This document shows, one piece after another, positions 8,975 through 54,114 of a stretch of DNA of 64,000 nt. The position numbers and the translations under genes are program-made. The stretch is from Hemiscyllium ocellatum (lineage: Eukaryota). Location of the stretch: the NCBI RefSeq assembly GCF_020745735.1, contig NC_083426.1, forward strand, positions 12,834,001-12,898,000, written 5' to 3'. Positions within the stretch are counted from its first letter, which is position 1, and every line of letters begins with the position of its first letter. The notes under the pieces were generated by a model that saw only the letters and a program-made list of their open reading frames with translations, was not told where the DNA came from and searched no databases.

Positions 8975-9095
8975 TCGTATATCCTGTTCCTCATTTAGCT
9001 TCTTGCAGACATTGCATCACACACTTATTTCAATGTGAGAAACAAGAGCTGTGGGACTGACATCAAGAACTGAACTGACCTTTGAGAATAAAACG
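8975..9095 (+). promoter_or_regulatory. Putative proximal promoter/5'UTR of gene A
   Basis: Conserved with 44140-44261 upstream of gene B. ETS/PU.1-like TTCCTC box near 8985 and a C/EBP-ATF composite ATTGCATCA at 9011-9019. Motif reading only; TSS unknown. Confidence 0.35.
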
Positions 9096-9132
9096 ATGTG
9101 GATATTGATTCTCCTCATGTGTTCCATTCCCG
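9096..9132 (+). CDS. Gene A exon 1, signal peptide [12 protein letters not shown](G)
   Basis: ATG at 9096, hydrophobic stretch, donor CCG|gtgagt at 9133; paralog at 44262. Confidence 0.85.
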
Positions 9133-12100
9133 GTGAGTGACCATCTGAGTTGTATATTCAGATAATCAATGTTTGTTGAAGTCCACTGTGTGGTTTATAC
9201 AGAAGAAATGTTTAAATATTTGAAGGTACATATTCAGATAAAGTGAGAGCTTGTGACACAATGGTTACATTGTTCTTGCTGTGATAAATGCTGAGAGTTT
9301 GATTCTCACTCCAGCACATTTCACAAAAGCATGTGTGTTCTCACAAAGTCGAACAGGTTCATTACCAACCTGTAAATCCATCGAACATGCCCAGTCCAGG
9401 GAGCAGGACTGGGTGAGGTTCCAGGTCAGCCTTACACAATGCAGAGTGACACCCCTCACATTACAGCGACTGGCTTCAGGCAAGTGACAAGCTGTAGAAA
9501 ACAGACACAGCATGGACTTTTTCTACCCCATGTATCTCTAAATATGGAAGTCTTGGATGTTGAAAGGAACAAATATAAAAATACCTGAACAACATCACAA
9601 ACATATCTTCTACTGAACATATTGCAATCCCATGTGACACAGTTCCCAAATACTTGAGAGCAGCTTTATTAATTCTGAATTAAATAAAAATGGACCAAAT
9701 AATGTTTCATTTGAGTGAAAAAAGCAGCATAATTACTTTAATTTTTCTAATGTTTTTAATGTTGAAGATACACTGAAATCTGGAGTTGTAATCAGCCCTC
9801 AAGGGAAACATTTTGAGTTGATTAAATATTGTTTTGTGCGGCTCAGTTGCAAAAGTAGATGATTAGTTTAATTTCTCTTCACAGAAAAAGCCTTTTATCT
9901 TTCAGTCATTAACGTGAATCAAGTCGCTGACTCTCTTTAAATCCCACTGTTTTACACATTACAATGTAACACTAAAACTATTGCTCATCATTGCAACCTT
10001 CGAGTAAAAAATGAGGTCTGCAGATGCTGGAGTCTATCTCTCACTGCACCCCCCAGGTCATCTCCTCTGCACAGAACGCCCCTCCCCCAAGTCCCTCCTC
10101 CTTACCTTTTATCTTAGCCTGCTTAGCAAACTCTCTCTCATTCCTGATGAAGGGCTTATGCTCGAAACGTCGAATTTCCTATTCCTGAGATGCTGCCTAA
10201 CCTGCTGTGCTTTAACCAGCAACACATTTTCAGCTCTCATCATTGCAAACTCTCCATTTATGAGCAAGGAATTATCAAACACTCAAGATTAAAATTCCCA
10301 GTGTGGCATTACTCTAAACTGGAACTCCGTGAATTCTGTTCCATGAAAACTTCCTGAAATATTTTGTGGCTCTCGCCCACCAAATTCATGTAGAATACTT
10401 CACGGGCAGAAACCTGAAGCATGAATCTCTCTGTTTTCACAACTCTCTTTCATTCAAGGCTTTCCTTTTTCCAATGAGGTCTCTTTCTCCTGACTTGCAT
10501 CAGCTTTACATATTCATGAACTGAATGCCTTTCTCTTCTCCTCTCCACCTTAGATTTCAATTCCATTCTGTCATTTTACTCAAGAATTGTTCTCCACAAA
10601 AAGGGTGGTTCTCCCAACAAGATTGTTGGTCTGGTATTTATTGAAGTAAAGTCTCCCCAGTCATCAATAGGCTGTTCCTCTCCCACACCAGGAAACAACA
10701 TTGCAGCAATTTAAGAACTGTCTCATGAAACATCTCTCTGGTACAGTCAGTAAATTATTTATGTTATTTTACACTCCTTACACAGACAACAATGTGTGAT
10801 TACAAACCATCCTGCCCTCAAGGTCCTACACATTGATCTCTCTCTCCCGTTGTGAACCATCCCTTGCTGAACTCCAATTCTCTTCCTCTCCCACTTGAGG
10901 ACTGTCATCATCTTGCCTGAGTCACCTATTGTATCTACACGTTGAGCCCTGAAAATGCAGGCCCAGAGCCCACCATGACTTTACACACACCCCTCTCCTC
11001 CCTGGATTAAACCCTCGTTCTCTAGTCAGAGTAAGGGTCCTTCAGCACCTGTGCCCAGCCAACTCCAATCCAAGCCTGTCTCTTGGGCTGCCCTCGCGGT
11101 GGGAGGATGGGGGTTGGGGTGTGCGGGTGTGGTCAACACTGCGATGATGTCACACACAGTGGAGTTAGAGCCCACAGCGGACAGCACAAACCCAATTTCC
11201 AAGATTGTCGCAAAGCTCGGCCGGTGGTGTATGAAAATATCCCGACTACTTCAATCATTCATAGAGTCATAGAGATGTACAGCATGGAAACAGACCCTTC
11301 GGTCCAACTCCTCCTTGCTGACCGGATATTCCAACCCAATCTCGTCCCACCTGCCAGCGCCCAGCCCATATCCATCCAAACCCTTCCTATTCATATACCC
11401 ATCCAAATGCCTCTTAAATGTTCAACTGTACCAGCCTCCACCGCATCCTCTGGTAACTCATTCCATACAGGTCCACCCTCTGCATGAAAAACTTGCCCCT
11501 TAGGTCCCTTTTATATCTTTCCCCTCTCACCCTAAAACTATGCCCTCTAGTTCTGGACTCCCCGACCCCAGGGAAAAGACTTTGTCTATTTATCCTATCC
11601 ATGCTCCTCAAAAATTTCTAAACCTCTATAAGGTCACCCCTCAGTCTCCGACGCTCCAGGGAAAACAGCCCCAGTCTTTTCAGCCTCTCCCTGTAGCTCA
11701 GATCTTCCAACCCTGGCAACATCCGTGTAAATCTTTTCTGAACCCTTTCAAGTTTCACAACATCTTTCCGATAGGAAGCAGACCAGAGCTGCATGCAATA
11801 TTCCAACAGTAGCCTAACCAATGTCCTGTACAGCCGCAACATGACCTCCCAACTCCTATACTCAATACTCTGACCAATGAAGGAAAGCATACCAAACGCC
11901 TTCTTCACTATCCTATCTACCTGCGACTCCACTTTCAAGGAGCTATGAACCTGCACTCCAAGATCTCTTTGTTCAGCAACACTCCCTAGGACATTATCAT
12001 TAAGTGTATAAGTCCTGCTTAGATTTGCTTTCCCAAAATGCAGCACCTCGCATCTATCTGAATTAAACTCCTGCCACTTCTCAGCTCATTGGCCCATCTG

Positions 12101-15100
12101 ATCAAGATCCTGTTGTAATCTGAGGTAACCCTCTTCGGTGTCTATTACACCTTCAATTTAGGTGTCATCTGCAAACTTACTAACTGTACCTCTTATGCTC
12201 GTAACCAAATCATTTATGTAAATGTCAAAAAGTAAAGGGCCCAGCACTGATCCTGATCACTGGCCTCCAGTCTGAAAAACAACCCTCCACCACCACCCTC
12301 TGTCTTCTACCTTTGAGCCAGTTCTGTATCCAAATGGCTGGTTCTCCCTGTATTCCATGAGATCTAATCTTGCTAATCAGTGCCCCATGGGGAACGTTGT
12401 TGAACGCCTTCATGAAGTCGATATAGATCACATCTACTGCTCTGCCCTCATCAATCTTCTTTGTTATTTCTTCAAAAAACTCAATCAAGTTTTGTGAGAC
12501 ATGATTTCTCAAGCACAAAGCCATGTTGACTATCCCGAATCAGGCCTGGCCTTTCCAAACACATATACATCCTGTCCGTCAGGATTCCCTCCAACACCTT
12601 GCCCACCACCGAGGTCAGGCTCACTGGTCTGTAGTTCCTTGGCTTGTCCTTACCACCCTTCTTAAACAGTGACATCACGTTTGCCAACATTCACTCTTCC
12701 GGCATCTCACCTGTGACTATTTTTGCTCCTTCACAATCTACAGACCCAGAAAATAACACCGTCTTATTCCTCGACAAACACTGCCCCAGGTTAAATTAAT
12801 AGCTATGGCTTATATTTTAAGTTTAATCAAGAGGCTTATTTACAAAACCATATAATCATGAAAGAATCCACTGTACCCACTACTGCAGCCTTTCGCTTGG
12901 ACAGGCTTAAAACAACAATTACCTTCTCTGATTGTGTACTGTGAACTTCGTCCAACAGTTCCTCCAAGATTCGGTGTGAACTTCACTGATTGTTAATTTT
13001 CCCAGATGCGCTGCGATGTCCAGCGATACACGAATTCAAACAGCAAAGGCAGTAACTGTGCAGGTTTTCTCTCTCTCTCTCTCTCTCCTGCACTGTCCTC
13101 ACCATGTGCTTCCTTTGTCTGCTCTTCTCCCTTTTAAACTGCTGTTGTTTTGACTTTTTTTTCCAAAGTTCCAAAACAATGCAACAGCAGATAAACAATA
13201 ATTGCTGCTTCTGGAATTCGTGGAAATCACCTCCAACACCTAAAATACCTCAAAAAAAGGAGCAGCTCTTACAGCCAGAAATGTTTCCCATCCTGGGAAT
13301 TTGGAACATCCTGAGGCTGTGACAAAGGATTGCCTTCATCATGAACTCGATGGAATGGAGCTGATTAAAATGTTAATGTTTATATTAAGCAATTCAATCC
13401 AGTCAAATTTATCAATTTGATTCTCCTCCGTTTCAGGTGATTTATGGGCAGAGAAAGATGTAACGGGAATTTTGGGAAGAGCGATCACAATATCTTGTCA
13501 CTACGAAGCACGGTGGTACCAGTCACACATAAAATATTGGTGTCTCGGATGGACTCGTCAGTGTAAGGTAATAGCAATGACAAATTGGCCAAATGGGAGA
13601 ATATCAATCACTGACAACAAAACACAAGGAATATTTCTTGTCACAATCAAGAATCTTCAATGGAGTGATGCCGGACGATACAGCTGTGGGATTGAGTTTC
13701 CTGGTATTGAGCTTGACCTCCTGTTTACCGTAAATCTGCACATCTCTGAAGGTAAATGTCTCATTGATCTTTTCAAAAGATACTCTCTGCTGATATATCT
13801 TATCAATGTTTATCCAGGAAGAAAAGTGACAAAGAGTTGGGGGATATTTGATTTTTTGATCTCTCAAAAATTGTTTCTTTCCCACAGAAGCTGTCTCTGT
13901 TCCTGGGCTTCGATTTTTATCCCAACCAAAAACCTCATGGTCTGGGTTTTCAGTGACCTGTGAGTCTGCCCGGGGATCCCTCCCCATCCACTACACATGG
14001 TCTGAGAAGATGCCATCACAAGATTCAATGATCTCTGACACCAATAAACTGGATCTACATTGTCAATCCTTCACACAGCAACATCATCAATATTACTGCA
14101 CAGCCTCAAATACTCAGGGAACAAAACCCAGTGAAATTGTTCATGTGTCAGTCAACAATGTAAGAGAGAAGAACTGCAGTTATAGGATACAGATCAACAG
14201 CATCGGTAAGTGTGATGTAAACAATGCTTGTTTATTATCTCTCTCTGGGAAACTGTAATTGATAAAATGCACTCCATTTGTTTCTTCATCATTTCTGGAA
14301 AAATCCAAGGGTTTACACTGTAGTTAGAAAATGTGGAGGTCCAAAAAATACTAACCATGTCATGCAGAAACATTGGAACAACTTCAATAATCCCCGCAAA
14401 ATTAAAACAGCATTTTATTGATGGAGAATTTGCATTTTTCTAACAAATGGAATTTTAAATTCACTCCTTGAATGTTGTGTCCAGATTTAGGGCCGATATT
14501 GGGGATAGAGAGGAAATCAGTTGTACAATGAAATACCTATAAATATTGCCTGCAGCCATTTCCTGATCTGATCTGTTTGAGCTGTCAGAGAAGAAGCAAG
14601 TCAGCATCAAGTCGAAGTGACCCACGGGAACTGTATTTGGAACTATCAGCAGCAGCTCATGTGGCTGCACTCCCACTTTTGATGCCAGCATGTTGGGGGT
14701 TCCAGTTCCCCTTCGGGGTTAAAATCCAGCTGGATCCCAGTGCCCAGCAGAGAGAAGTAATGCTGTGCTGTGGCAGGTGAGACAGTGTCGATGAGGTGAG
14801 AAACTGAGAACCTGTTCCCCCTTTAGGAATGGCACCATTTGTAAACTATTTACAGAATAGAGGTCCTCCTAGTGTCTGAGCAAGCATTCATAGAGTCATA
14901 GAGTCATAGAGATGTACAGCGTGGAAACAGACCCTTTGATTCAACGCGTCCATGCCGACCAAATATCCCAACCCAATCTAGTCCCACCTGCCAGCACCAG
15001 GCCCATATCCCTCTAAACCCTTCCTATTCATATACCCATCCAGATTCCTTTTAAATGTTGCAATTGTACCAGCCTCCACCACTTCTTCTGGCAGCACATT

Positions 15101-18100
15101 TATTCCATGTACCACCCTCTGTGTGCAAAAGTTACCCCTTAGGTCTCTTTTATATCTTTCCCTCTCACCCTAAACCTATGCTCGCTAGTTCTGGACTCCC
15201 CCACCCCAGGGAAAAGTCTTTGTCTGTTTATCCTATCCATACCCCTGTTGGGGAGAATCTGCTATCGGGGTACCTACATTGGGGCTAGGGAGGGGAGCAC
15301 CATTATTAAAGCAGACACTGTCAGATACCAGCTAAAACACAGCCATGTAAAGTAAACCCAGCCACTGCAGGACTGCCTGCCTGGGGCCACATTCCTGGGG
15401 GATTAGAACATGTCCGTCAGTTTCAGATCATCCTATTACACTCTCATTGTTAATAAAGGAAACCGGTAACTATCGGATAGTGTAAATCGCACCGATACCA
15501 CACTTGATTGATAAAGTACTTGCTAATGCCTCCGCTGACGTCAAACTCATTCGGGTCCTGTGTTAAATGATAATATCTGTATATTCAACTATGGAGAACT
15601 ATTGTGAACGCCCAGACAGCCAGACGCATAGCAATGAGGAAACCCTTCCAACAATAAACTTTTAATTTACAAGATCGGAAACTGCCGAACCCAGGATGTC
15701 TACCCATTGTTCGGCACAGCAGGAGTGGGACAGGTATCTCGGGGCAGCCAATAGAGACACTAATCCCTTCACAGATAGGTGAACCGACCAATGAAAGAGC
15801 CGAACAAGGGGAACCTGACCGGGAACTCGAGGAAGCGCGAAGTACAACTGCACCAGATCCGAAGGGAGAGACAGAACGCCTTCTCCAACGAATTGCATGC
15901 CTTTGAATTCGTTGTATAGTTTGCCAGTTTTGATCCTGTAATAAACGGTGTTTTTGCTCCAAACTCTAGCCGGTTTGATCTCTCCTTCCAACGAACACGT
16001 AGAGACGAGACCATTCGGTTTCCGTCTCAACACCCCTCATAATGTTGTAAACCTCTATAAGGTCACCCCTCAGTATATGACGCTCCAGGGAAAATAATCC
16101 CAGCCTGTTCAGCCTCTCTCTATAGTTCAAATCCTCCAACCCTGACAAAATCCTTGTAAATCTTTTCTGAACCCTTTCAAGGTTCACAACATCTTTCCGA
16201 TAGAAAGACAACCAAAATTGCAGACAATATTCCAGCAGAAGCCTAACCAATACCATGTACAGCTGCATCATCACCTCCCAACTCCTGTACTCAATACTCT
16301 GACCAAGAAAAGGAAACATATCAAATGCCTTCTTCACTATCCAATCTACCTGCAACTCCACTTTCAAGGAACTATGAATCTGCACTCCAAGGTCTCTTTG
16401 TTCAGCAACACTCTCGAGGACCTCACCAGTCCTACGAAGATTTGCTTTCCAAAAATGCAGCATCTCGCATTTATATGAATTAAACTCCATATGCCACTTC
16501 TCAGCCCATTGGCCCAACTGATCAAGATCCTGTTGTAATCTGAGATAACCTTCTTCACTGTCCACTACACCTCCAATTTTGGTGTCATCTGCAGACTCAC
16601 TAACTGTACCTCTTATGATTGTATCCAAATCATTTATGTAAATTACAAAAAGTCGAGGACCCAGCACCGATCCGTGTGGCACTTCACTGATCACAGGACT
16701 CCAGTCTGAAAAACCACCCTCCACTACCACCCTCTGTCTTCTAACTTTGTGCCAGTTCTGTATCCAAATGGCTAGTTCTCCCTGTATTCCATGAGATCTA
16801 ACCTTGCTAATCGATCTCCCATGGGGAAACTTGTCAAACACTTTACTGAAGTCCATGTAGATCACATCTACCATTCTGCCTTCATCAATCCTCTTTGTTA
16901 CTTTTTTCAAAAACCTCAATCAAGTTTGTGAGACATGATTTCCCACGCACAAAGCCATGTTGATTATCCCTAATCAGTCCTTACCTTTCCAAATACTTGC
17001 ATATCCTCTCCCTCAGGATTCCCTCCAACAACTTGCCCACCACTGACATCAGGCTGACTGGTTATAGATCCCTGGCTTGTCTTTACTAACCTCCTTAAAT
17101 AGTGGCACCATGTGAGCCAACCTCCAGTCTCCTGGCACCTCACCTGTGACTATTGATGATCCAAAAATCTCAGCAAGAGGCCCAGCAATCACTTCTCTAG
17201 CTTCTCAAAGAGTTCTAGGGTACACCTAATCAGGTCCTGGAGATTTATTCACGTTTATGCATTTCAGGACATCCTGCACTTCTTCCTCTGTAATATGGAC
17301 ATATTCCAAGGTGTCACCATTTACTTCGCTACTTTCTATATCTTCCATAACCTTTTCCACAGTAAATACTGATGCAAAATACTCACTGAGTATCTCCCAC
17401 ATTTTCTGTGGCTCCACACAAAGGCCGCCTTGCTGATCTTTGAGGGCCCCTATTCTCTCCCGAGTTATCCTTTTGTCCTTAATGTATTGTAAAAATCTTT
17501 GGATTCTCCTTAACTCTATTTGCCAAAGGTATGTCATTTCCCTTTTTACCCGCCTGATTTCCCTCTTAAGTATACTCCTACTGCCTTTATACTCTTCTCA
17601 GGATTCACTCAATCTATCCTGTCTATACCTTACATATGCTTCCTTCTTTTTCTTAAGCGAACCCTCAATTTCTTTAGTCATCCAGCATTCCCTATACCTA
17701 CCAGCCTTTCCTTTCACCCTAACAGGAATGTACTTTCTCTGGATTCTCGTTATCTCATTTCTGAAGACTCCCCATTTTCCAGCCGTCCCTTTACTTGCGA
17801 ACATCTGCCCCTAATCAGCTTTCAAATGTACTTGCCTCATACTGTAAAATTAGACTCTCTCCAATTTAGTACTTCAACTTTTAGATCTAGTCTATCCTTT
17901 TCCATCACTCTTAAATCTCGTGGAATTATGGTCGCTGGCCACAAAGTGCTCCCCCACTGACACCTCAGTCACCTGCCCTGCCTTATTTCCCAAGAGTAGT
18001 CAGGTTTTGCACATTCCCTGGTAGGTACATCCACATACTGAATCATAAAATTGTCTTGTACGCACTTAACAAATTCCTCTCCATCTAAACCCTTAACACT

Positions 18101-21100
18101 ATGGCAGTCCCAGTCTATGTTTGGAAAGTTAAAGTCCCCTACCATAACCACCCTCTTATTCTTACAGAAAGCTGAGATCTCCTGACAAGTTTGTTTCTCA
18201 ATTTCCCTCTGACTGTTCGGGGGTCAGTAATACAATCCAAATAAGGTTATCATCCCTTACTTATTTCTCAGTTTCCCCCAGATAACTTCCCTGGATGTAT
18301 TTCCAGGAATATCCTCCCTCAGCACAGCTGTAAGGCTATCCCTTATCAAAAACGCCACTCTCCCTCCTCTCTTGCCTCCCTTTCTATCCTTCCTGTAGCA
18401 TTTGTATCCTGGAACATTAAGCTGCTAGTTCTGCCCATCCCTGAGCCATGTCCCTGTATTTGCTGTGATATGCCAGTCCCATGTTCCCAACCATGCCCTG
18501 AGTTCATCTGCCTTCCCTGTTAGGCTCCTTGCATTGAAATAAATGCAGTTTAATTTAACAGTCCTACCTTGTTCTCTGCTTTGTCCCTGTCTGTCCTGAC
18601 TGTTTGAATCACTTCTGTTCTCAACTGTACCAGTCTCAGATTAATCTCCTTCCTCACTATCTCCCTGGGTTCCTCCCCAACCCCCCCACACCACCCCCGC
18701 CCCCCCCCCCGCCCAACGTTACTAGTTTAAGCCCTCCTGCCCAGCTCAGGCAAATTTCCCTGCCAGTATATTAGTCTGCTTCCAATTCAGGAACAATCCG
18801 TCCCTCTTGTCCAGGTCATTTCTACCACAGAAGAGATTCCAATGATCCAAATGTGTGAATCCTTCACCCATACACCAGCTCCTCAGCCATGCATTCATCT
18901 GCTCTACCCTCCTATTCTTGCCCTCACTAGCTCGTAGCACTGGGAATAATCCAGATATTACTACTCTCGAGGACCTCCATTTTAAATTCCTGCAAAACTC
19001 TCTGTAATCTCCCTTCTGAATCTTAACCATTTCCCTTCCTATGTTGTTTTTTTCCAACATGGACAATGACCTCATGCTGATCCCTCTCCCCTGTGAGAAC
19101 ATTCTGCACCCCCTCTGAGACATCCTTGATCCTGGCGCCAGGGAAGCAACACATCATTCTGCTTTCTCGCTGATGGCCACAGAAACGTCTGTCTGTACCT
19201 CAGACTAGAGAGTCCCCTAACACAACCGATCTCTTGGAACTCGACATACCCCTCATTGCATCAGAGCCTATCTCAATACCAGAAACTTGGCTGTTCTTGC
19301 TACATTCACCTGAGAATCCATCATCCCCTGCATTTCCCAAAACAGCATACCTGTTTGAAATGGGGATAGTCACAGAAAACCCTGCATTACCTGCCTACCT
19401 CTCTTACCTTTCCTGGACATAACCCATCTATGTGACTGTATCTGCAACTTTTCCCCCTTCCTATAACTGCCATCCATCACGCCACCTTGCTCTTGTAAAT
19501 TCTTCATAGCCCTTAACTGTCTCTCCAACCGATACATTCGATATGAAAGGATTTGCAACCAAAAGCATTTATTGCAGATATAATTCTCAGTAACATGTAA
19601 ACTCTCTCAGAACGATCACATTCAACAGGAAGGGCATATCACTCTTCACCAGGCCATTTTTGCTTCTTCCAATTTGCAGACCCAGAAAATAGGACTGTCT
19701 TATTCCTCTCCTGCTCCAGGCTAACTTAATGCTTATATTTTTAAGTTTAATCAAGAGACATATTTCAATAAAACATGTAATCAAGAAAGAAACCACTCTA
19801 CTCACTACTGCAGACTTTCTGTCAGGCCACACTTAAAAATATTCACTTATCTGTTTCTGTGCTGTGACCTCTCCCAAACAGGTTCCTCCAAGATTAGTTG
19901 TCAATTTCATTGTCTGTTAATTTTCTCAGGCGCACTACGATGTCCAGTGATACATCAATTCAAACAACAAAGGCAGTAACTGAGCAGGTTCACTGCTGTG
20001 TCAGTTAGCAGTGTGGGTTTCCTTTTCTGTCTCCCTGTCCTGCACTGACCTAACCATGTGTTGCCTTTGTCTGTTCCTCCCCCTTTTAAAAGTGCTGCTA
20101 ATTTGACATTTTTTGCCCAAAGTTCCAAAACAATGCAGCAGCACTTAAACAGTATTTGCTGCTCCTGGAATTCGAGGAGATCACCTTCAACACCTGAAAT
20201 ACCTCAAAAAAGGAGCAGCCTGTTACGGCCAGAAATTTTTCCCATCCTCCATCTTGGATTACCCAGAATCCTCTTTTTGCTGCCTTCCAACTGTTTTCTT
20301 TCTTCAAATGAGTACTTCACAGAATGGGAAGTATTTTGGGATCTCCTCAGATTCTCGAAAGCACCAAGACCCTTCTGATTTATCAACGTCCTTTAGGCAA
20401 TGATATCTGCCACCATTTCCAAGTCTGCTCCACATCAGACTCCAGTAATGTACTTTGTCCTTAACTGCCCACTTCAAATGGCTTAGAAAACCACTCAGTC
20501 AGGGGAATTGGAATGGACAACAAAAGCTGTCCATTAAAGTCTAAAAAATAAAGAGTTCATAGTTTATTTGTTGCAGAAATGATTCACCTAAAAAAAAACC
20601 CCAACCCATGTTGACTGTGCATTCCCTGGAGATGGGGAACCTCATCTGTCTGTCTCATGGATTCTCACACTTCAGGAGATGGAAAACCACTGGCGGGTTG
20701 TGTCGGTGTGAGGATGAGGTTTCACATTATTCCTGCAGGCTCAGAAAACAGACCTCAAGAGGATGGAGGTGACCACTGTCTATGTCGGCAAGTGACAGCT
20801 CCATGTGAAACCCATGGTTTTAAACAAGTGGGATATCTGGGATGTAGTTACCAGCCCAAACCCTTTAACAAACACCAATGTGACACACCAACTCTCAGAT
20901 TCAGGGAAAAAAGTAATCGGGATTGTCATTGTGGGGAACTACAGGAGATGGGAGAGATACTGAACAAATATTTCGCAGGAGTTTCTACAATGGAAAATAA
21001 CATAGAGGTGAGGGAGCTCCAGGAAATAAACATTGATGTCATAAGACACAGTCCATATTATACAAGAGGAAGTTTTGGAGGTTTTAAAAAACATAAAAGT

Positions 21101-35897: not shown

Positions 35898-36073
35898 TTA
35901 AAAATGGCAAAACACCAGGTTATAATCCAACAGGTTTAATTGGAAGCACACTAGCTTTCGGAGCGCTACTCTTTCATCAGGTGGGCTTCCAATTAAACCT
36001 GTTGGACTATAACCTGGTGTTGTGTCATTGTTAACTTTGTACACCCCAGTCCAACACTGGCATCTCTAAATCA
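35898..36073. mobile_element. Penelope family 2 insert with inverted arms; hammerhead at 35984-35948 (minus)
   Basis: 13-bp TSD TGTTTGGATAATG. CCAC-CUGAUGA-A-AGAGU(AGC)GCUCC-GAAA-GC-UA|GUG. Confidence 0.8.
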
Positions 36074-37121: not shown

Positions 37122-37271
37122 CAGGATGTTGAGGTGCCAGTGTTGGACTGGAGTGGGCAAAGTCAGAAGTCACACGACACCGGGTTATAGTGCATCAGGT
37201 TTATTGAGATCACAAGCTTTCTGAGCGTTGGTCCTTCAGGTGAAGTCACCTGATGATGGGACAGTGCTCTG
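37122..37271. mobile_element. Penelope family 2 insert with head-to-head hammerhead remnants
   Basis: TSD AAACCT(A/C)TGGGC (37110-37121 and 37272-37283). Confidence 0.7.
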
Positions 37272-37489
37272 AAACCTCTGGGCACAATCTTCTCTGCCCA
37301 GAGGCGGTAGGCCTGGAGTTGGCAAGTGAGCTTTATTAGCTCGGATGGTGGGGCACCTAACCCAGGCACTTCTCCACCCTTGATTGAATTTGGATCTCAG
37401 CAGGAAGGTCCAAGCTCCAATAACACCAACTCACCACCAACTGAGACCCTTAAGTGCTCATTCAAGCTTCAAGTGCTCTTTCAGCTCCA

Positions 37490-37895
37490 GGAGAAAGTGA
37501 AGACTGCAGATGCTGGAGGTCAGAGTCAAAACGTGTGGCACTGGAAAAGCACAGCAGGTCAGGCAGCATCCGAGGAAGGAGAGTCAACGTTTTAGGCAGA
37601 AGCTCTTCATCAGGAATGGAAGGCACGGGCAGAAGTATGTTGAGAGATAAATAGGAGGGTGGGGCTGGAGCTGGGGCTGAGGGAGGGTAGCTCAGAAAGT
37701 GATAGGTAGATGCACGTGGGAGGTGATGGTGATAGGTCAGAGGGGATGGTGGAGCGGTTTGGTGGGAAGGAAGATGGACAAGTAGGATAGTTCAAAAGGG
37801 CAGTGCCGGGTTGGAGGATTTGATCTGAGATGAGGTGGAGGAAGGGCAGATGAGGAAACTGGTGAAGTGATCATTGATGCCGCGTGGTTGGAGAG
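37490..37895 (-). mobile_element. Penelope family 1 3' fragment at the A/B block boundary
   Basis: Terminal repeat and a decayed hammerhead at about 37585-37617. Confidence 0.7.
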
Positions 37896-44261: not shown

Positions 44262-44298
44262 ATGTGGACTTTGATTCTCCTCATTTGTTCCATTCCCG
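44262..44298 (+). CDS. Gene B exon 1, signal peptide MWTLILLICSIP(G)
   Basis: ATG at 44262, donor CCG|gtgagt. Confidence 0.85.
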
Positions 44299-47200
44299 GT
44301 GAGTGACTATCCGAGTTGTATATTCAGATAATCCACATTTGTTGAAATCCACTGTGTTATAAAGTAGAAATGTTTAAATATTTGAAGATACATAATTGGA
44401 AAAGGGAGAGCTTGTGACACAATGGGTAACATCGTTATTGCCATGGCAAATGCTGAGAGTTCAATTCTTACAAAAGTACATTTTTCAAAGGAATGTGTCT
44501 TCTCACAAAGCCAAACTGGTTCATTTTCAACCTACAAATCCTTCCAACATACAGAGAGTAGGACTGGGTGAGATTCCACATCAGTCTTTTCCAATGCTCA
44601 CTTAAAAATCACGCAAAACAAAGATTTAGTCCAGCAGGTTTATTTGGAAGCATTCGCTTTCAGAGCACTGCTCCTTCATCAGGTGAACACAACCACTTGA
44701 TGAAGAAACAGTTCTTCGAAAGTTAATGCTTCCAAACAAACCTGTTGAACTATAAACTGCTGTTGTGTGATTTGTCTACCCCAGTCCAACACCGGCACCT
44801 CATGGTTATCCAATGCAGAGTGACACCCCTCACATCACAGCAACTGGCTTCAGGCTGGTGACAAGCTGCAGAAAACAGACACAGCATGGACTTTGTCTGC
44901 TCCATGTGTCTCTAAATATGGACGCCATTGAATCTTAAAAAAACAAACATAAAAGTACATGAACAACATCACAAAATGTAGTAATTCTACTAAACACTTT
45001 ATAATCCCATGCTGCAGAGTTCCCAAATAATTTAGAGCAGCATAATGAATTATGAATTAAATTAAAAGGGTACCATAACATTTTTTTCAGTGAAAAAAAG
45101 GGCACAATTATTTTAATTTGACTGAAGTTTTCAATTTTCAATACACACTGAAAAGTGTATGAGGAATAAGCCCTCAAACAAAACATCTTGAGTTTGCTTT
45201 TATTTATTTTATTTTTGAAGATCAATTCATTAAATATTGCTCTGTGAGGCTCAGTCACAAAAGGAGATGGTTGGTTTATTTTTCTCTTCACTTAGAAAAG
45301 CCTTTTTCCTTTCAGTCTAATTGAATCAAGTTGTTTGCTCTCTTTCAATTCCATTGATTTACACAGTACAATAAAGTTAATGCTCATCATTGCAATCGCT
45401 CCATTAATGATAAAGAAATGTTTGAAAGACTCAAGAATAAAATTCTCAGTGTCGCTTTCCCCTCGGCTACAGCTCTGTGAATTCTGTTACATGAAAATTC
45501 CCTGAAATGTTTTGTGGCTCCAGCCCACCAACTTCATGCAGAATACTTCATGGACAGAAATCTGAAACATGCATCTCTCTGCTTTCACAGTTCTCTCTCT
45601 TTCAAGGCTTTCTTTTTCCAATAAGGTCTCTGTCTCCAAACCAGCATCATTTTTAATCATTCACGTATCTCCCTCCCTTTCATCTCAGATCTCCACCTCT
45701 TCACTTACATTTAAAATCCTTTGTTATTTTACTCAAGAATTGTTCGTCACACAAAGGGCAGTTCTCCCAAAAAAACTGTTGGTCTGGCATTGATTGAAGT
45801 AAAGTCTACGCTGTCATCAACAGGCTTCTCCTCTTCAACACCAGGACACAATGTGGCAGCAATTTCAACATTTTCTCATGAACCATCTCTCTGGCACAAT
45901 CAGTAAATTACTTCTGTTATTTTATTATTCATACAATGATATCAATATGTGATTATAAATAATTCTGCCTTTACTGCCCTCAAGATCCTCCACATTGATC
46001 TCTCTCCCATCGTGAACCATCCCTTGCTGAACTTTAATTCTCTTCCTTTCCCACTTAAGGTCTCTTATCATCTTCCTGGATCACCTGTTTTCTCGGCCCC
46101 TTGAGCCCTGAAAATGCAGCCCCTGAGCCCATCATGAGTCCACATAGATCCCTCTCCTCCCTGGATGAAACCCTCCTTCTCCAGTCGGAGTAAGGACCCT
46201 TCAGCACCTGTGCCCTCCTTCACACTGATCTTCAGTCGACTCCAATCCAGGCCTGTCACTCAGGCTGCTCTCCAGGGGGAACAACATTTTGATGATGTCA
46301 CACACGGTGGAGTTAGAGCCCACAGCGGGCAGCACAAACCCAATTTCAAGATTGTCCCAAAGCTCGACCAGGGAGGTAAGAAAATATTCCGACTGTTTCA
46401 ATCATTCCCTGGGAATATGGAACAGCCTGAGGCTCTGATAAGGGTTTATATTAATGATTACCTTCATCATGTACTGGATGGAATGTAGCTGATTAAAATG
46501 TATCTGTTTGTAATAAGCAGTTCTTTCCAGTTAAATTTCTGAAATATTGTCTCCTCAGTTACAGGTGCTGTATGGGCAGAGAAAGGTGTAACGGGAATTT
46601 TGGGAAGAGCGATCACAATATCTTGTCAATACGAAGCACGGAGGTACCAGTCACACAAGAAATATTGGTGTCTCGGATGGACACGTCAGTGTAATGTTAT
46701 AGCAACGACAAATTGGCCAAATGGGAGAATATCAATCACTGACAACAAAACACAAGGAATATTTCTTGTCACAATGAAGAATCTTCAATGGAGGGATGCA
46801 GGATGGTACAGCTGTGGGATTGAGATGTCTGGCTATGACCCGATGTTTAATGTAAAGCTGCACATTTCTGACGGTACGTGACTCACTTTGTTTTAAATTA
46901 CTCTCTGCTGATATGTCTGATCAGTGTTTTATCCAGGAAGAAAAGTGACAAAGTGTTGGGGAATATTTGAATTTTCTCACAGAATAATTGTTTCTTTCCC
47001 ACAGAAGCCATCTCTGTTCCTGGGCTTCGATTTTTATCCCAACCAAATGTCTCATGTTCTGGGGGGTCAGTGACAGTCTCCTGTGAGTCTGCCCGAGGAT
47101 CCCTCCCCATTCACTACACATGGTCTGAGAAAATGCCATCACAAGATTCAAAGATCTCTGACACCAATAAACTGGATCTACATTGTCAATCCTTCACACA

Positions 47201-50200
47201 GCAACAACATCAATATTACTGCTCAGCCTCAAATACTCAGGGAACAAAATCCAGTGAAATTGTTCATGTGTCAGTCAACAATGTAAGAGAGAAGAACTGC
47301 AATTATAGGATACAGATCAACAGCATCGGTAAGTGTGATGTAAACAATATTTGTTTACTATCTCACTCTGGGAAACTGTAATTGATAAATGCACTCCATT
47401 TGTTTTCATTGTCAGTTCTGAACAAAGCCAATGGCTTGCCCTATACTTAGAAAGTACATAAAAGCCTACCCACAGCATAGGGAGACATTGCAACATCTCC
47501 AATGATCCCAGCAAATTAAAATAGCATTTGATTGACAGACAATTTGCATTTTTGTAACAGAAGGAATTATTAAATTTAGTCAGTGACTGTTGTGTGCAGA
47601 TTTAGGACAAATATTGGGGACAGATTGGAGATCAGTTGCACAAATGAAATACAGAGGAACCTCGATTATCTGAACGTCGATGATCCTAATTTCGGGTTAT
47701 CCAAACAGGATCTCAAGGTCCCGATGCTTTGGTGAACTGTATTATCCAAACATTCGATTATCCAGACAAAACATTCCCTTCCCGAGTCATTTGGATTATC
47801 AAGGGTCCTCTGTATATGTAAATATTGCCTGCAGCCATTTCCTGATCTGATCTGTTTGAGCTGTCAGAGAAGAAGCAAGTCAGCATCAAGTCGAAGTGAC
47901 ACACGGGAACTGTATTTGGAACTATCAGCAGCAGCTCATGTGGCTGCACTCTCACTTTTGATGCCAGCATGTTGGGGGTTCCAGTTCCCCTTCAGGGTTA
48001 AAATTCAGCTGGATCCCACTGCCCAGCAGAGAGAAGTAATGCTGTGCTGTGGCAGGTGAGACAGTGTCAATGAGGCGATAAACTGAGAACCTGTTCCCCC
48101 TTTAGGAATGGCACCATTTGTAAACTATTTACAGAATGGAGGTCTCCTAGTGTCTGAGCAAGCATTCATTCCTCAATCAATGTTACTAAAAACAATCAGA
48201 TTTTTGAGAAATTATTTCACTTTAGGTTTGAGTTATTGTTGCATTCCAACTGTTTGTTTCCATCTCCTCAGATCCTGTAATGTACCAAAACCCATCTGAT
48301 TCATTAATGTTCTTTAGGGAAGGAAATCTCTAGCCTTTTCCAGGTCTGCTCCACATGGGACTCCAGCAATGTGGTTTGTTCTTAAACTGCTCTCTTCAAA
48401 AGGTTTAGAAAGTCACTCAGTCAGGGTTAATTAGAAATGGGCTACAAAATCTGGCCATTAAAGACCAAAAAATAGAGAATCAACAGTTTACTTGTTGCAG
48501 AAATAATTCACATAAAACACACCCAAGCCGTATTGCCTGTGTACCCCTTGGAGATGGGGAACCTTATCAGTCTACCTCATGGATCCTTTTGGTTCAGTTG
48601 ATGGAAAATCTTTGGTGGGTTTTGTGTCTATAAATGAGGCTTCCCATTATTCCTGCAAGATCGGAAAACCATCTCAAGAGGGTGGAAGAGACCTCTGTCG
48701 GCAAGTGACAGCTCCATGTGAAACCCGTGGTTTTAAACAAGTGGGATACCTGGGTCATAGTTACCAGCTCAAACCCTTTAACAAACCCCAATGGAACACA
48801 CCAACTCTCAGATTCAGGGAAAAAAGTAACCGGGATCGTCATTGTGTGCAACCACAGGAGATGGGAGAGATACTAAACAGTCCACGTTACAGAAGAGGAA
48901 GTGCTGAAAGTCTCAAAATGCATAACAAGAGATAAATCTCCAAAATCCGATCAAATGTCATCCAAACCAATGTGGGAAATTAGGGAAGAAATTGTGGGGC
49001 CCCTAGCAAAGCTATTTGTATCATCCACAGTCACAGGTGAGGTGCTGGAGGACTGGAGGGTGGCTAATATTATTCATTTAGTTCGGAAAGGCTGTATGGA
49101 GAAGCCTGGGAATTATAGATCTGCGAGTCTGACAGCAGTGGTGGGTAGGTTGTTGGAGGGGATTTTGAGAGATTGCATGTATATGCATTTGGAGAGGCAC
49201 AAACTGATTAGGTATCATGCTTTGGAAATCGTGTGTTACAAACTTGATTGAGTTTTTTGAGGACGTAACTAAAAAGATTGATTAGGGTAGAGCAGTAGGC
49301 AATGTTTCACATGGTGGACGAAATAAAGTTAGATCACATGGATTCAGGGCGAGCTTGCCAATTGAATACAAAATTAACTTGATGGCAGGAGACAGAGGGT
49401 AATGGTGGAGGGTCATTTTTTTCGATTGGAGATGTGTGACCTGTGGTATTCTGCAGTGATCGGATTAAGTTATATAAATTATTTGAATGAGAATTTAGAA
49501 GGAATGGTTAGCAAGTTTGTGGATGACACCAAAATTGGTGGTATTGTTGATAGTGATGAATGTTATCTATGATTACAAAGGGATCTTGCTCAATTGGGCC
49601 AGTTAGCTGAGGATTGGCAGTTAGTTTCATTTGCATCAATGCGAGCTATAGCCTTTTGGTAAAACGAACAAAGACAGGACTTATACAATTAAAGGTAGGG
49701 CCCTGGGTAATGCTGTCAAACAGAGAGTCCCAGGAGATCTTTGAAATTTTCATCCCAGGTAGACAGGGTGGTTAAGAAGCTATTTAGTATGCTTACCATC
49801 ATTGCTCAGACCAATGAGTGTTGGAGTTGGTACAGCACGTTGCGCTTGCATAGAATGATGGTGAGGCCACTTTTTGTTTTGTGCGTACAGTTCATGTCAC
49901 CCTGCTTCAGGAAGGTTATTATTAATTTGAAGAGGTTTCAGAAAAGATCTACTAAGATGTTGTCGTGATTGGAGGGTTTGAGTGATAAGGATAGGCTGGG
50001 ACTTTTTCCACTGGATCGGAGAAGGTTGAGAGGTGACTTTATAAGAGGATAATAAAATCATGAGGTGAATAGCAAAGATTTTTAATCATGAGGCAGAGTG
50101 AGTTCAAAGTGAGGAGGTATACTTTTAAGATGTAAGGAGAACAATGTAAAAGGGAGGTGTGGTGCCACACGTTGACACAGAGGGTGGCTCATTTGTGGAA

Positions 50201-53200
50201 TGAAATGCCAGAGGACATGGTGGATGAAGCTAGAGTTACATGTAAACGACATTTGATTAGATACATGAATAGAAAAGGTTTAGAGTGACATGAGCCAAAT
50301 GCAGAAGAGTGGTACTAATTTATTTTGAGAAACTTTTTGGGCACTGATGCGTTAAACAGAAGGGTCTCTTTCCGTGCTGACCATGACTCTAACATTTTCA
50401 GCAGAGTTAGACCACTTATAGGTGTCATTGTTACCAGGGAAGGGGAATTAATGCAAAACTCCATGATATCAAATGGGCTGTTCCCCAAGTAATGAAGTTC
50501 CATTTATTCATGAGGTTCTCTCTGGTAACTACAAATGAAAAGGAGATGAATCTGAACATCATTCCCTTGTTTCAACAGGTGGACGATATAATTGTACTGT
50601 TTCTTCAACAACATCACCAGGAACTACACATTCCCCAAATACAAGTGGAGGTTCCTCTGCCAGTCTAACCCAACTCTCCGGAAATAATTCCCATGAAACG
50701 TATGATATTATCTTTTTCATTCCATGTGTGAGGTTTACAATATTTTTGAACAATTATTGGCGAAACGTGTCAAAGCCTTTTGTTGTTTTGGAAATGAAAA
50801 TGGTGCTGGGTTTATATTGAGCTCCTGTGTTAGTTCCATATTAAAGGTTCAATTGTTTTTGAAAAGCACAAATGGAAAATAATTGTTTCTATTTTGTTGG
50901 CCCTCAGATGGCATTGCTCATCTTCATTACTTCACCATTAATCTACACCATCTGTCATGTCCCTGCTTGCCAAACGTACCTTGCTGCTGTGATCTTGAGT
51001 GAGGTTTCAGGATAGTGTCATTCCTGCTGGTGAAAAGGAAGGTTTGAAGTGATATTTCTGCACAGGGACAGATAGCTCGCAGCGTTAGGCTTTAGCCTGA
51101 GTTCATCAGCCTGAGCTGTCGGTAATAAGCTGCAGGAACTGTAAGTGTGATAGAAACACTGAGCAAATCATTCTTGGAAGTTACAATGGGGATGAGGGAA
51201 AAGTGCCAATTAAGTGTCAGTTAGAAACGGAGAATATTGGAAACGCAAAGTGATTTAATCTATATTTGGATAGAAATAGCTCAGTGCAGAATTCTTCACA
51301 ATTGTAGTCGACACCCGAAGCAACCCCCAGATACTGTCTGATCATACCTTTCCAGCAACTTCTGTTTTTCATTCAGGTCTCCAGCACATGTTATTCATTT
51401 GTTTTTAAACAGATAATACTCTGTGATTCAAAAAGCATTGAAAGTTTATAAATTTTATTTGCAGTCATATCTATATATCTGTTGTGTTAAGTTTGTGTAA
51501 ATGAAGATCATCGGAATCTAACATCCATTCTCAAACCTGTTGTTGCTAATTTTTAGTGGTCATCCAGTGTTCCTTTATTCCATTTTTACCGAGTGAAATT
51601 TACCACATCTTAAAAAGGCTCAGTGGTGGTACACTCACCTTCTATGTCAGAGATTGTGAGTTTACTTCCTCTTCAGAACCATGGGCACATTATCAATGCT
51701 GAGTCCCTAGTGCAGTACTGAGGCAGTGCCATGCTATTGTGGTACTATCTTCCCTGTGTGATCAATCCAGGCCCCATCTCCCCCTCTCAGGGGAACGTGA
51801 CAGATCTCTTGGTGATATTTGTGGAAGAGCAGGGCTGTTCTCCCTGGAGATCTGGGCAATACTTCTCCCTTACCAATTCCAAATTGCATGATCAGTCATC
51901 TGATTATTGTTTGTTGAAATATACTGTGTGCAAATTGAATGCCATGTTTGCCTAAAAAACATTTAAGTATTTCACTTCATGCATTGTTTTTGGATGTCCT
52001 GAGGTCATGAAAGTGTTTCTTAATATATTTCTTGCATCAAAGGGCCTAGAATCATGGGTGGCACAGTGGCACGGTGGTTAGCACTGCTGCCTCACAGCAC
52101 CAGAGACCTGAGTTCAATTCCTGCCTCAGGCGACTGACTGTGTGGAGTTTGCACGTTCTCCCTGTGTCTGTGTGGGTTTCCTCCGGGTGCTCCGGTTTCC
52201 TCCCAGTCACAAAGATGTGTGGGTCAGGTGAATTGGCCATGCTAAATTGCCCGTAGTGTTAGGTAAGGTGTAAATGTATGGGTGGGTTGTGCTTCGGCGG
52301 GTTGGTGTGGACATTTTGGGCCGAAGGGCCTGTTTCCACACTGTAAGTAATCTAATTGATTGTGTATTAACACTGTCCCTTTTCTATTCTCAATATCCCA
52401 GTCTGGTTTACATTGTGGTCGGTGTACTGGGGGCCATTCTGGTTGTTTTTGCTGTTGCTCTACTTTTGTACCTAAGACAAATCAACAAGGGTGAGTTTTT
52501 ATTTCTCTTCAATTGTTTCATTTACCTCAATAGCTTGTAGTTGAGAATAGTAAGTATATCAGACTTGGATCTTCTAATGGCTAGATATCTGATATTCCAG
52601 TATAGTCAGGAGCTGCATGTGGGAACACTGCAGAATCTCCATCCTAGCAGACGCTGAAGAGATTGCCCCGAAAATTGAATGTTCCACTTGGCAATTCCTC
52701 AAACCTGGGACCATTCATTTAATTCAGTGATTTTCAATAAAATTCAGTAAAATCATTACTCGGTAAAAGTTAGGTTAATAAATGGGTGGCCAAATGTCTG
52801 AGTAACTGTTCAACTAACCCCGTACTTACTTCACATGTCCTGAACAATATCTTCTCAAGCCTCCTTACACCCCTCAGACTCATGTTGGGAATTGTGTTGC
52901 GATGGTGATGAATGAAGTTCAGTGCATACAGGATTATGTACACTGCAAAACATGTTCAGTTTGAAGATTTTAAACATCTAGCATTCCTGTCAAATTAGCT
53001 TGAACAATTCAATTGTAATGTTTCAGGTACACTCTGCATCATGTGTCAACAAAGTGATAAGTCTCTTAATAATGGCCAGGTAAGGATGATAAATATTAAA
53101 CTGTATGGAAATTTGCAGAACATAGCAAATGTCTGTACTGGAAATCCTGTTTGGTCCATGTAGTGCACGTCGGCTCTTATCCTCCTCACAAGATTTCCTG

Positions 53201-54114
53201 AATTCCTTTTCATCTAACCCTATCAATTTCCAACTCCTGCTTTCTCCACATGCTTATCAAGTTCTCTCTCAAATATCACAATGCAACTTGACTCAACTCC
53301 TCCCTTAGAAAAAAAATAGAAAATTCAGGAGAAACCTTGTTATCCAAAGATTGTCAGAAAGTGGAACTTATTGCCATTAGGGGTCCTTGAGGCAAATATT
53401 GTAAATCCATTCAGAGGGGCAGCTGGATAAGAACAGGAGGATGAAATGAATAGCAAGATATATCGATGAGATTGGATGAAAATGGATAGAGGAGGCTCAA
53501 GAGGAGAAGGGCTTTTACCCAAAACATCAACTCTCCTGCTCCTCGGATGCTGCCTGACCTGCTCTGCTTTTCCAGCACCACACTTGCAACTCTAATCTCA
53601 GCATCTGCAGTCCTCACTTTTGCCTAGTCAAGAGGAGAATTACTTTAGTACTGGGTTCAAATGCCTGTTCTACACTGGAAGTGATTTATAATATCTTCTA
53701 TTACTGTACATTGATTAATAATAATCAAGAATTTGCTTTCTCTTTGTAAGGACACAAATCATCATTCAAGTGAATGAAAAATATGTTTTTCTTCCATTTT
53801 AGGAATTGGTGCCAGTGGAAGAGAACTTGGTATATGCAAACATAAACCACACTCAAAGGAACACAGCAGAAAGACAAAGCAAGAGAAGAAGCAACTTGAA
53901 GAATGATGAAATCACATACGCGGCATTGGAATTTCAAAAGAAATCATTATCACTGAGAGGTGGGCTGGCAATGCACACAGGTGACAACTCAGACAGTGTC
54001 ACCTACAGTGAGCTCAACTTTCCAACCCAGCCGCCAAAGGGGAATAAAAATGCCCCAAAACGCAACACCCCTCAGGAATCTGGAAGGGAAGTTTATGCTG
54101 ATATTACTTTTTAG
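44262..54114 (+). CDS. Gene B: CD300/pIgR-like (MDIR-like) inhibitory receptor, V-C2-stalk-TM-ITIM tail, 414 aa
   Basis: join(44262..44298,46565..46873,47005..47328,50579..50699,52402..52490,53027..53079,53803..54114) = 1245 nt. All introns GT-AG, open frame. Confidence 0.9.
44598..44808. mobile_element. Penelope family 2 inverted insert in gene B intron 1
   Basis: TSD TCCAATGC; empty in gene A at about 9440; two mutated hammerhead cores. Confidence 0.75.
46565..46873 (+). CDS. Gene B exon 2, Ig V-set domain
   Basis: ttacag|GT acceptor and GACG|gtacgt donor, 309 nt. [19 protein letters not shown]; FG loop is 2 aa shorter than in gene A. Confidence 0.92.
47005..47328 (+). CDS. Gene B exon 3, Ig C2-type domain
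   Basis: cccacag|AA acceptor and ATCG|gtaagt donor, 324 nt; all five Cys retained. Confidence 0.9.
47652..47812. mobile_element. Tc1/mariner (pogo/Tigger-like) MITE, 161 bp
   Basis: Imperfect TIRs CAGAGGAACCTCGATTATC / CAGAGGACCCTTGATAATC with TA on both sides; absent from gene A at about 14535. Confidence 0.75.
48855..50390 (+). mobile_element. Old CR1 fragment in gene B post-C2 intron
   Basis: Paralogous to 24725-26165 plus 28480-28680. Confidence 0.8.
50579..50699 (+). CDS. Gene B exon 4, Ser/Thr-rich stalk
   Basis: tttcaacag|GT acceptor and AC|gtatga donor, 121 nt. [40 protein letters not shown]. Confidence 0.82.
52054..52357 (+). mobile_element. HE1-like SINE 44 nt upstream of the gene B TM exon
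   Basis: A/B boxes and TAATC tail; absent from gene A at about 31368. Confidence 0.88.
52402..52490 (+). CDS. Gene B exon 5, transmembrane segment
   Basis: atcccag|T acceptor and AAGG|gtgagt donor. [29 protein letters not shown]. Confidence 0.88.
53027..53079 (+). CDS. Gene B exon 6, juxtamembrane CxxC exon
   Basis: tttcag|GT acceptor and CAG|gtaagg donor, 53 nt. GTLCIMCQQSDKSLNNGQ. Confidence 0.8.
53509..53627 (+). mobile_element. Penelope family 1 mini-insert truncated inside the hammerhead
   Basis: Perfect 12-bp TSD TCAAGAGGAGAA; empty in gene A at about 34385. Confidence 0.8.
53803..54114 (+). CDS. Gene B exon 7, ITIM-bearing cytoplasmic tail
   Basis: ttttag|GAA acceptor, ORF to TAG at 54114. 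Motifs LVYANI, ITYAALE, VTYSEL and EVYADI. Confidence 0.9.
   Translation, partial: ELVPVEENLVYANINHTQRNTAERQSKRRSNLKNDEITYAALEFQKKSLSLRGGLAMHTGDNSDSVTYSELNFPTQPPKGNKNAPKRNTPQESGREVYADITF

Follow-up and report, generated by a model that had tools for sequence, protein, structure and literature searches.

What kind of receptor joins, in one protein, an immunoglobulin (Ig) V domain close to those of pIgR and CD300 with a C2 domain close to those of the FCRL proteins? This question is raised by a stretch of 64,000 nucleotides (nt) from the genome of the epaulette shark Hemiscyllium ocellatum (NCBI RefSeq assembly GCF_020745735.1, contig NC_083426.1, positions 12,834,001 to 12,898,000 of the forward strand), hereafter called the window and numbered from its first letter, in which two neighbouring genes, here named A and B, encode such proteins. 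We consider it highly probable that A and B are tandemly duplicated and intact genes of the modular domain immune-type receptor (MDIR) family, of the inhibitory MDIR2/MDIR3 type. Their predicted products are colinear from end to end with MDIR2, MDIR3 and MDIR5 of the clearnose skate, with MDIR2 of the elephant shark and with RefSeq predictions from other sharks. Product B aligns over residues 1-412 with skate MDIR2 (here P0222, 416 amino acids, aa) at 43% identity (E 1e-108), and product A aligns with skate MDIR3 (P0175) at 42% identity over 620 aa (E 4e-143) and with skate MDIR5 (P0192, itself V-C2-V-C2) at 48% over 442 aa. The MDIRs were published from skate (Cannon et al., 2006, Immunogenetics 58:362, as cited in PMC3031540). 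The find is therefore sound and largely ordinary, of a family described in 2006 and already predicted in related sharks, and it brings no new kind of system.

Gene structures of the tandem pair

Gene models were built from open frames, three-frame reads and the protein-guided mapping of database relatives, and exon joins were set by enumerating the frame-keeping AG/GT boundaries and then splicing the result. An earlier note on this DNA had claimed that two complete genes, of V-C2-V-C2 (625 aa) and V-C2 (414 aa), can be spliced without a stop, and that they share a stalk, an uncharged membrane span and a tail with several immunoreceptor tyrosine-based inhibitory motifs (ITIMs). Both claims were borne out by GT-AG sites and phases, with the same lengths, and the shared parts are seen in the spliced products of A and B. 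Gene A is predicted to have 9 coding exons on the + strand (9096-35407, 1875 nt, 625 aa, V-C2-V-C2) and gene B to have 7, also on the + strand (44262-54114, 1242 nt, 414 aa, V-C2). In both genes AG and GT stand at all internal boundaries, the phases are compatible and the spliced frame holds no stop; the Ig exons are all of phase 1-1. The coding exons are as follows.

9096-9132, + strand: gene A signal exon, with ATG and signal peptide, ending in phase 1
13437-13751, + strand: gene A V1 exon, pIgR/CD300-type V, phase 1-1, Pfam V-set 1.1e-8
13888-14205, + strand: gene A C2a exon, without the conserved upstream Cys and two residues
23816-24130, + strand: gene A V2 exon, Pfam V-set 5.4e-12, alternative acceptor at 23810, 97% identity to V2 of P0177, an H. 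ocellatum RefSeq model
24264-24587, + strand: gene A C2b exon, with Ser for the B-strand Cys (VTVSSES; TGT to TCT)
28868-28988, + strand: gene A stalk exon, Ser/Thr-rich, 95% identical to the C-terminus of P0177
31412-31494, + strand: gene A transmembrane exon, uncharged
33889-33941, + strand: gene A short cytoplasmic exon, phase 1 to 0, 94% identical to P0335/P0336 of C. punctatum
35096-35407, + strand: gene A tail exon, with LVYANI, ITYAVL, VTYSEL, DVYADI and the stop codon
44262-44298, + strand: gene B signal exon, with ATG and signal peptide MWTLILLICSIPG, 100% identical to P0177 residues 63-90
46565-46873, + strand: gene B V exon, PDB matches pIgR 8.2e-31 and CD300LF 2e-16, alternative acceptor at 46559
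47005-47328, + strand: gene B C2 exon, PDB match FCRL5 4.3e-28, to domains 4-9
50579-50699, + strand: gene B stalk exon, from protein-guided mapping and splice sites
52402-52490, + strand: gene B transmembrane exon, uncharged
53027-53079, + strand: gene B short cytoplasmic exon, from protein-guided mapping and splice sites
53803-54114, + strand: gene B tail exon, with LVYANI, ITYAAL, VTYSEL, EVYADI and the stop codon

The second in-frame acceptor of the gene B V exon, 6 nt upstream at 46559, adds Val-Thr and gives PVTG, a better fit to the PVSG of most homologues, so that the gene B product has either 414 or 416 residues. All six gene B junctions are free of gaps in the multiple alignment of relatives.

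The arrangement of the pair is preserved in the bamboo sharks C. plagiosum and C. punctatum, whose RefSeq predictions, automatic models with names that say little or mislead, have the same exon layout at 85-88% identity. XP_043572421.1 of C. plagiosum (414 aa, 'uncharacterized') is 85% identical to gene B over 414 of 414 residues. In XP_072419285.1 of C. punctatum (P0336, 1073 aa), residues 1-624 correspond to gene A (87% over 619 residues, with five gap positions) and residues 672-1073 to gene B (88% over 402 residues, gap-free); by this alignment the orthologues of A and B, in unchanged order, have been run together by read-through into one model. The pair, with every one of its junctions, is thus conserved in a second genus, and since the pair is present in both genera it predates their split, with both frames still open in both. 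This conserved tandem arrangement goes with the hand annotation of two new family members. The best individual matches come from RefSeq models of H. ocellatum (97% for V2, 95% for the stalk and 100% for the gene B leader region).

Domain kinds and family membership

The V exons match the Pfam V-set at E 1e-8 to 5e-12, and against PDB the gene B V exon finds pIgR (8e-31) and CD300LF/CLM-1 (2e-16), followed by CD300A, TREM2 and NKp44. In the multiple alignment the V domains carry an extra C-C' cysteine pair (KYWC...C) and DAGWYSCG. A structure model was made of the V-C2 unit of the C. plagiosum orthologue (85% identical) from a family alignment of 40 sequences, reaching a predicted local distance difference test score (pLDDT) of 89.9; its V domain superposes on mouse CD300LF with a root-mean-square deviation (rmsd) of 1.1-1.2 Å over about 105 residues (TM-score 0.82-0.86), and the top Foldseek match of the model is a teleost pIgR.

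For the C2 domain, the only strong PDB match of the gene B exon is human FCRL5 (PDB 9loc), with E 2.4e-20, or 4.3e-28 when the full exon is used. The match falls on the repeated membrane-proximal domains 4-9 of FCRL5, with the motifs CE..RGSLPI.Y and YYC.A.N..G, and in a residue-level alignment the N-terminal FCRL5 domains show no match to the C2 exon. The term 'FcR-type C2', which the earlier note had used, is accordingly better replaced by 'FCRL5 domain 4-9 type'.

The membrane spans of A and B are both uncharged, and each tail holds three ITIMs that fit [SIVL]xYxx[IVL], namely LVYANI, ITYA(V/A)L and VTYSEL, plus a C-terminal (D/E)VYADI. The central motif (ITYAxL/V) is conserved in the alignment from chimaera to sharks, through heterodontid, catshark, cow-shark, skate and chimaera relatives, and it aligns with IMYAAV of skate MDIR2.

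An exhaustive, profile-free search with the C2 exon returned 225 proteins. In the closest of them V alternates with C2 over one or more units, and some also have a homologous tail; database models of the family range from a single V-C2 unit up to five V and six C2 domains. The family is found across sharks, rays and the elephant shark and is predicted in every chondrichthyan genome sampled; among its members are the Callorhinchus 'modular domain immune-type receptor 2' and clearnose-skate MDIR2, MDIR3 and MDIR5. In maximum-likelihood trees the V domains of the window lie inside a clade of 35 rows (96/83) together with skate and chimaera MDIRs and outside pIgR/CD300, and the C2 domains lie inside an MDIR clade of 37 rows (98/99), outside FCRL5 and the fish FCRL-like repeats. 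The eight hemiscylliid V domains form one clade (100/98), as do the hemiscylliid C2 domains (100/97), with the batoid domains apart. Since both V and C2 domains cluster by lineage, the genes appear to have multiplied, and the V-C2 unit to have doubled, separately in the hemiscylliid and batoid lineages.

The proposal that the pair fits the MDIR family therefore stands, on end-to-end alignment to skate MDIR2/MDIR3 and on the placement of both domain types within the MDIR clade. So does that of a lineage-expanded cluster, given the single hemiscylliid clades apart from batoids; in the per-domain trees V and C2 do not group with any single non-immune Ig superfamily family. The remark that a repeated V-C2 unit is unusual holds against mammals and fails within the MDIRs, where one unit up to five V and six C2 domains is the norm: the V-C2 repeat is the defining MDIR architecture and no new receptor kind, and A and B are new members.

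To our knowledge, the MDIRs rest on essentially one study, of 2006, whose abstract reportedly describes MDIR2 and MDIR3 as an inhibitory subtype, uncharged in the membrane span and bearing one or more ITIMs in the cytoplasmic tail. The MDIR features compared here were drawn from deposited sequences and from PMC3031540. A and B show similarity to the skate MDIRs over their full length, a variable number of family-subtype Ig modules (V-C2 in B, V-C2-V-C2 in A), an uncharged span with three ITIMs per tail, as in inhibitory MDIRs, and the setting of a multigene family, with two genes in the window and at least 10 H. ocellatum RefSeq models of the family on one 58.7-Mb record (GCA_020745735.1). Compared with clearnose-skate MDIR2, MDIR3 and MDIR5, the kinds of V and C2 domain, their order, the Ser/Thr stalk and the single membrane span are the same, and the ITIM tail is shared with MDIR2 and MDIR3. 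Skate MDIR2 is colinear with gene B over its full length and skate MDIR5 is V-C2-V-C2 like gene A, so that gene A combines an MDIR5-like four-domain ectodomain with an MDIR2-like inhibitory tail. Identity to the skate proteins is 40-48%, and the shark tails hold three canonical ITIMs, in contrast to one in MDIR2. The module duplications of skate and shark appear independent, as V domains cluster by lineage.

Three other families were considered as alternative homes. With CD300/CMRF35 (CD300LF, CD300A) the V domains share their fold (rmsd 1.1-1.9 Å, 33-35% identity), the extra C-C' disulfide motif (YWC...C) and DAGxYxCG, and both CD300 and the MDIR-type family have paired inhibitory (ITIM) and activating (charged membrane span) members. 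However, CD300 proteins have one V and no C2, whereas each shark V is followed by a C2 and lies outside the pIgR/CD300 group in the tree, and membership of CD300/CMRF35 was rejected in spite of the V fold and the YWC...C motif. The case of pIgR is similar: it gives the best V sequence matches (E 8e-31, to several of its domains) and the top Foldseek match, but it is a transcytosis receptor built of V-type domains alone, with no C2 and no ITIM tail. In the window C2 alternates with V, the tail is of ITIM type and V lies outside the pIgR group, so this family too was set aside. In FcR and FCRL proteins the ectodomain consists solely of C2-type domains, among them the D1-D3 subtypes that classical FcR also have. 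Human FCRL5 (PDB 9loc) shows the C2 motifs CE..RGSLPI.Y and YYCTA.N..G in domains 4-9, and FCRL proteins also use ITIMs; yet they have no V domain, whereas A and B do, and the MDIR C2 domains, which match FCRL5 in domains 4-9 alone, form a clade of their own (98/99), which leaves FcR/FCRL membership rejected as well.

A further likeness, by architecture alone, is to the DICPs of teleosts, holosteans and the coelacanth, which are built as D1-D2 or D1a-D2a-D1b-D2b and occur in multigene clusters, some inhibitory with an ITIM, some activating with Arg in the membrane span and some secreted (bioRxiv 10.1101/2021.06.11.448072). Both groups pair two unlike Ig domains, once or twice per protein. Among the homologues of two bony-fish relatives of the window's genes (P0147 and P0269) there was no named DICP; all were unnamed proteins, and the bony-fish relatives themselves have about 320 aa.

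Rival readings and a proposed mechanism

Are both copies really intact, and is the four-domain protein the true product of gene A? Three observations weigh against our reading. The ratio of nonsynonymous to synonymous change (dN/dS) between the copies is 0.6-0.8 in V, C2 and tail, on few sites and not clearly below neutral; a conserved Cys is gone from both C2 domains of gene A; and, as regards annotation of the two loci, no RefSeq protein identical to product A or B was found among those retrieved. On the other side, when neutral drift was simulated at 5-15% divergence and stop-free frames were counted, such a frame survived in 0.15-8% of simulations for gene B and in 0.03-2% for gene A, which makes stop-free frames by neutral drift unlikely, and the transmembrane exon, with dN/dS of 0.09, is the sole clearly constrained exon.

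It is unlikely, in our judgement, that gene A yields mainly two-domain products, with V2-C2b or V1-C2a skipped, or a soluble form made by read-through of the stalk, the four-domain protein being minor or artificial. The phase 1-1 Ig exons do mean that any V-C2 pair can be skipped in frame, and P0177, a close paralogue or orthologue model, reads through the stalk donor, with the same open read-through present here. V2-C2b, however, has no leader, transmembrane or tail exons of its own, and four-domain proteins are on record as skate MDIR5, MDIR3 and RefSeq models in several species. The second V-C2 unit of gene A coincides with an internal duplication:

22109-24612, + strand: internal duplicate of the gene A intron-1/V/C2 segment, self-BLAST identity 73-86%

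This segment is a copy of about 9605-14231 minus a long interspersed nuclear element (LINE) insert. The only signal-exon matches in the window are at 9039-9134 and 44205-44300, and the copy at 22109-24612 comes without any leader, membrane or tail exon, so that V2 and C2b can be only internal exons of gene A.

Distinctly unlikely is a second reading, in which one gene, most probably A, is a young non-functional copy whose frame is open by luck or through recent duplication, while constraint on the protein, or expression, has already ceased. It would suit the dN/dS values, which with the stalk included span 0.6-0.9 over V, C2, stalk and tail, the damaged C2 domains of gene A (C2a without the conserved Cys and two residues, C2b with Ser for the B-strand Cys) and the gene A introns, swollen by LINE insertions to 26 kb. 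Yet a stop-free frame of 1875 nt with nine good splice pairs arises in at most 2% of the neutral simulations, the V-C2-V-C2-tail frame is retained in the C. punctatum orthologue (87% identity, five gap positions), and the transmembrane exon is constrained as given above. Elephant-shark MDIR2 as deposited likewise has no B-strand Cys, so the loss in gene A need not be fatal.

Very improbable, finally, is the reading that A and B are the cartilaginous-fish counterparts of the Ig-binding receptors (pIgR, Fc-alpha/mu-R, FCRL) and have shark IgM, IgW or IgNAR as ligands instead of lipids or other self molecules: the best PDB sequence matches of V are pIgR domains, the sole strong one of C2 is FCRL5, and sharks have J chain and polymeric IgM with no pIgR or FcR reported (PMC4016189, PMC10081254), but in the trees V lies outside the pIgR/CD300 group and C2 outside the FCRL group, and multi-ITIM tails with paired activating forms are more in keeping with innate receptors of the CD300 or KIR kind than with a receptor for transport. 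In its general form, that the MDIRs, A and B among them, are the missing Ig receptors of cartilaginous fish, living relatives of a form in which a pIgR/Fc-alpha/mu-R-type V was joined to an FCRL-type C2 domain, and bind polymeric IgM, IgW or IgNAR, the idea is just as improbable; if true, it would overturn the published statement that homologues of pIgR, FcRL and FcR first appear in bony fish (PMC4016189). The statement that sharks lack homologues of pIgR and FcRL (PMC4016189) is in any case made awkward by the fact that sharks hold the nearest relatives of pIgR-type V and FCRL-type C2 domains, joined in one protein. Judged from the trees, Ig binding by any MDIR is not favoured.

We return, then, to A and B as intact inhibitory MDIR genes. 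ITIM receptors such as CD300A/F, KIR, LILRB and FCRL act through phosphorylation of the motif, recruitment of SHP-1, SHP-2 or SHIP and damping of signals coupled to the immunoreceptor tyrosine-based activation motif (ITAM). For A and B, gene structures, domain kinds, family membership and motifs can be read directly, and expression, ligand binding and inhibitory signalling are inferred. Each product is predicted to be a type I membrane protein with an ectodomain of one (B) or two (A) units of pIgR/CD300-like V and FCRL5-like C2, in which C2 is a spacer, carried on a Ser/Thr-rich stalk of O-glycan type with the uncharged span and three-ITIM tail beyond. The membrane-distal V face would engage a putative ligand, for which one may guess at lipids, by analogy with CD300, or at immunoglobulin, by analogy with pIgR and FCRL. 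Src-family kinases would phosphorylate the ITIM tyrosines, which would recruit SHP-1, SHP-2 or SHIP, and signals from ITAM-coupled activating receptors on the same cell would be damped; these receptors may include family members with a near-identical V domain and an Arg-containing span, encoded elsewhere on the same epaulette-shark chromosome. With exon-level models of an inhibitory pair, and with near-identical V domains seen on activating forms with Arg in the span, it becomes possible to screen for ligands and to test signalling in a shark that has a good genome.

Among the three copies of the V-C2 unit, variable positions are about twice as frequent in V (34 of 105) as in C2 (18 of 109; p 0.01). 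The differences in V occur in the BC, C-C' and FG regions, with an excess of loop over strand positions that is not significant (p 0.21), and the copies may differ in ligand. Synonymous divergence is 0.06-0.08 in the C2 exons, compared with 0.14-0.20 in the adjacent V-C2 introns of 130 nt and 0.15-0.27 in the V exons; this low C2 value hints at gene conversion confined to C2 and suggests that the C2 exons have been converted or homogenised.

Duplications, relatives and neighbouring features

Self-comparison of the window shows two large colinear duplication blocks, at about 1880-36806 and at 37934-55629/56005, and so confirms the earlier description of the flanking homology as two large blocks (about 1.9-37.5 kb and 37.9-56.2 kb). 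Gene A spans 26 kb and gene B 10 kb, a gap in size that is due to LINE fragments in the introns.

Upstream of each gene lies a stretch that is probably a non-coding leader exon, as suggested by its donor site and by its homologue in P0177.

2406-2481, + strand: gene A candidate non-coding leader exon, GTGAGT donor at its end, 84% identical to P0177 residues 374-398
38459-38534, + strand: gene B candidate non-coding leader exon, GTGAGT donor at its end

They lie 6.6 kb upstream of the ATG exon in gene A and 5.7 kb in gene B, and the H. ocellatum RefSeq model P0177 uses a homologue of this stretch as an exon. If these are the leader exons, the promoters would be near 2.4 kb and 38.4 kb. At the other end of the ectodomain, the frame stays open beyond the stalk donor for 29 codons in gene A (28989-29070) and for 40 codons in gene B (50700-50820), and the C-terminal end of P0177 is the homologous read-through of the stalk donor; such a read-through could possibly give a soluble isoform.

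Family members elsewhere in H. ocellatum include P0230 (XP_060701344.1) and P0243 (XP_060701346.1), which share the V-C2 unit; their V domains match those of gene A at 85-96% identity, and P0230 has exactly the signal peptide of gene B. The C-terminal part of XP_060701344.1 and XP_060701346.1 consists of an Arg-containing span, WDVIRWVLFTLLV, and a four-residue tail. These activating-type genes (Arg-containing membrane span WDVIRWVLFTLLVICSV) lie outside the window on the same chromosome, and on their sequence P0230 and P0243 are likely activating partners of the inhibitory genes. No activating partner gene, and no Ig, transmembrane or tail exons beyond those of A and B, were found inside the window in searches with MDIR-family proteins. 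Rfam gave no match in the whole window at gathering scores, and within 10050-10270 no hammerhead ribozyme family matched even with E values of up to 10 allowed.

The membrane motif W-x-x-x-R-W-x-x-F is common to skate MDIR5 and to unnamed V-C2 proteins of the coelacanth, the paddlefish and many teleosts (P0192, P0098, P0102, P0147, P0269, P0296 and P0300, the unnamed ones of about 230-350 aa). The C2 tree places these bony-fish proteins within the MDIR clade, as the V tree does for those from teleosts, and by sequence they look like an unnamed bony-fish branch of the MDIR family. That the family, including its activating form with Arg in this motif, is conserved as a gene family without a name from chimaeras to teleosts and the coelacanth is better supported than a role as Ig receptors.

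Automatic annotation has given the family such names as 'polymeric immunoglobulin receptor-like', 'Fc receptor-like protein 5', 'CMRF35-like molecule', 'A33 antigen-like' and 'uncharacterized'; for sharks and rays these names are misleading or, in the last case, uninformative, and several RefSeq models fuse adjacent genes. P0177 is a RefSeq read-through that fuses a gene with Arg in the span to the second half of a gene-A-like gene, and P0002, in which two V-C2 units are separated by a second signal peptide, likewise fuses neighbours by read-through.

The remaining features of the window are repeats. LINE fragments in both orientations lie at 1-1500, 11260-13290, 14890-19650, 20940-22100 and 24720-28480, with further ones at 31620-33300, 40560-42310, 48880-50300 and 62370-63800. 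They occupy introns and flanks and explain most of the extra length of gene A; examples are RVT_1 in a 317-aa frame (15966-16919, - strand) and zf-RVT in a 321-aa frame (62833-63798, + strand). Upstream of gene A there is also a direct tandem repeat of 2.1 kb (4111-6167 and 6341-8445, 91.7% identity), of which the block of gene B has a single copy at 42365-43615.

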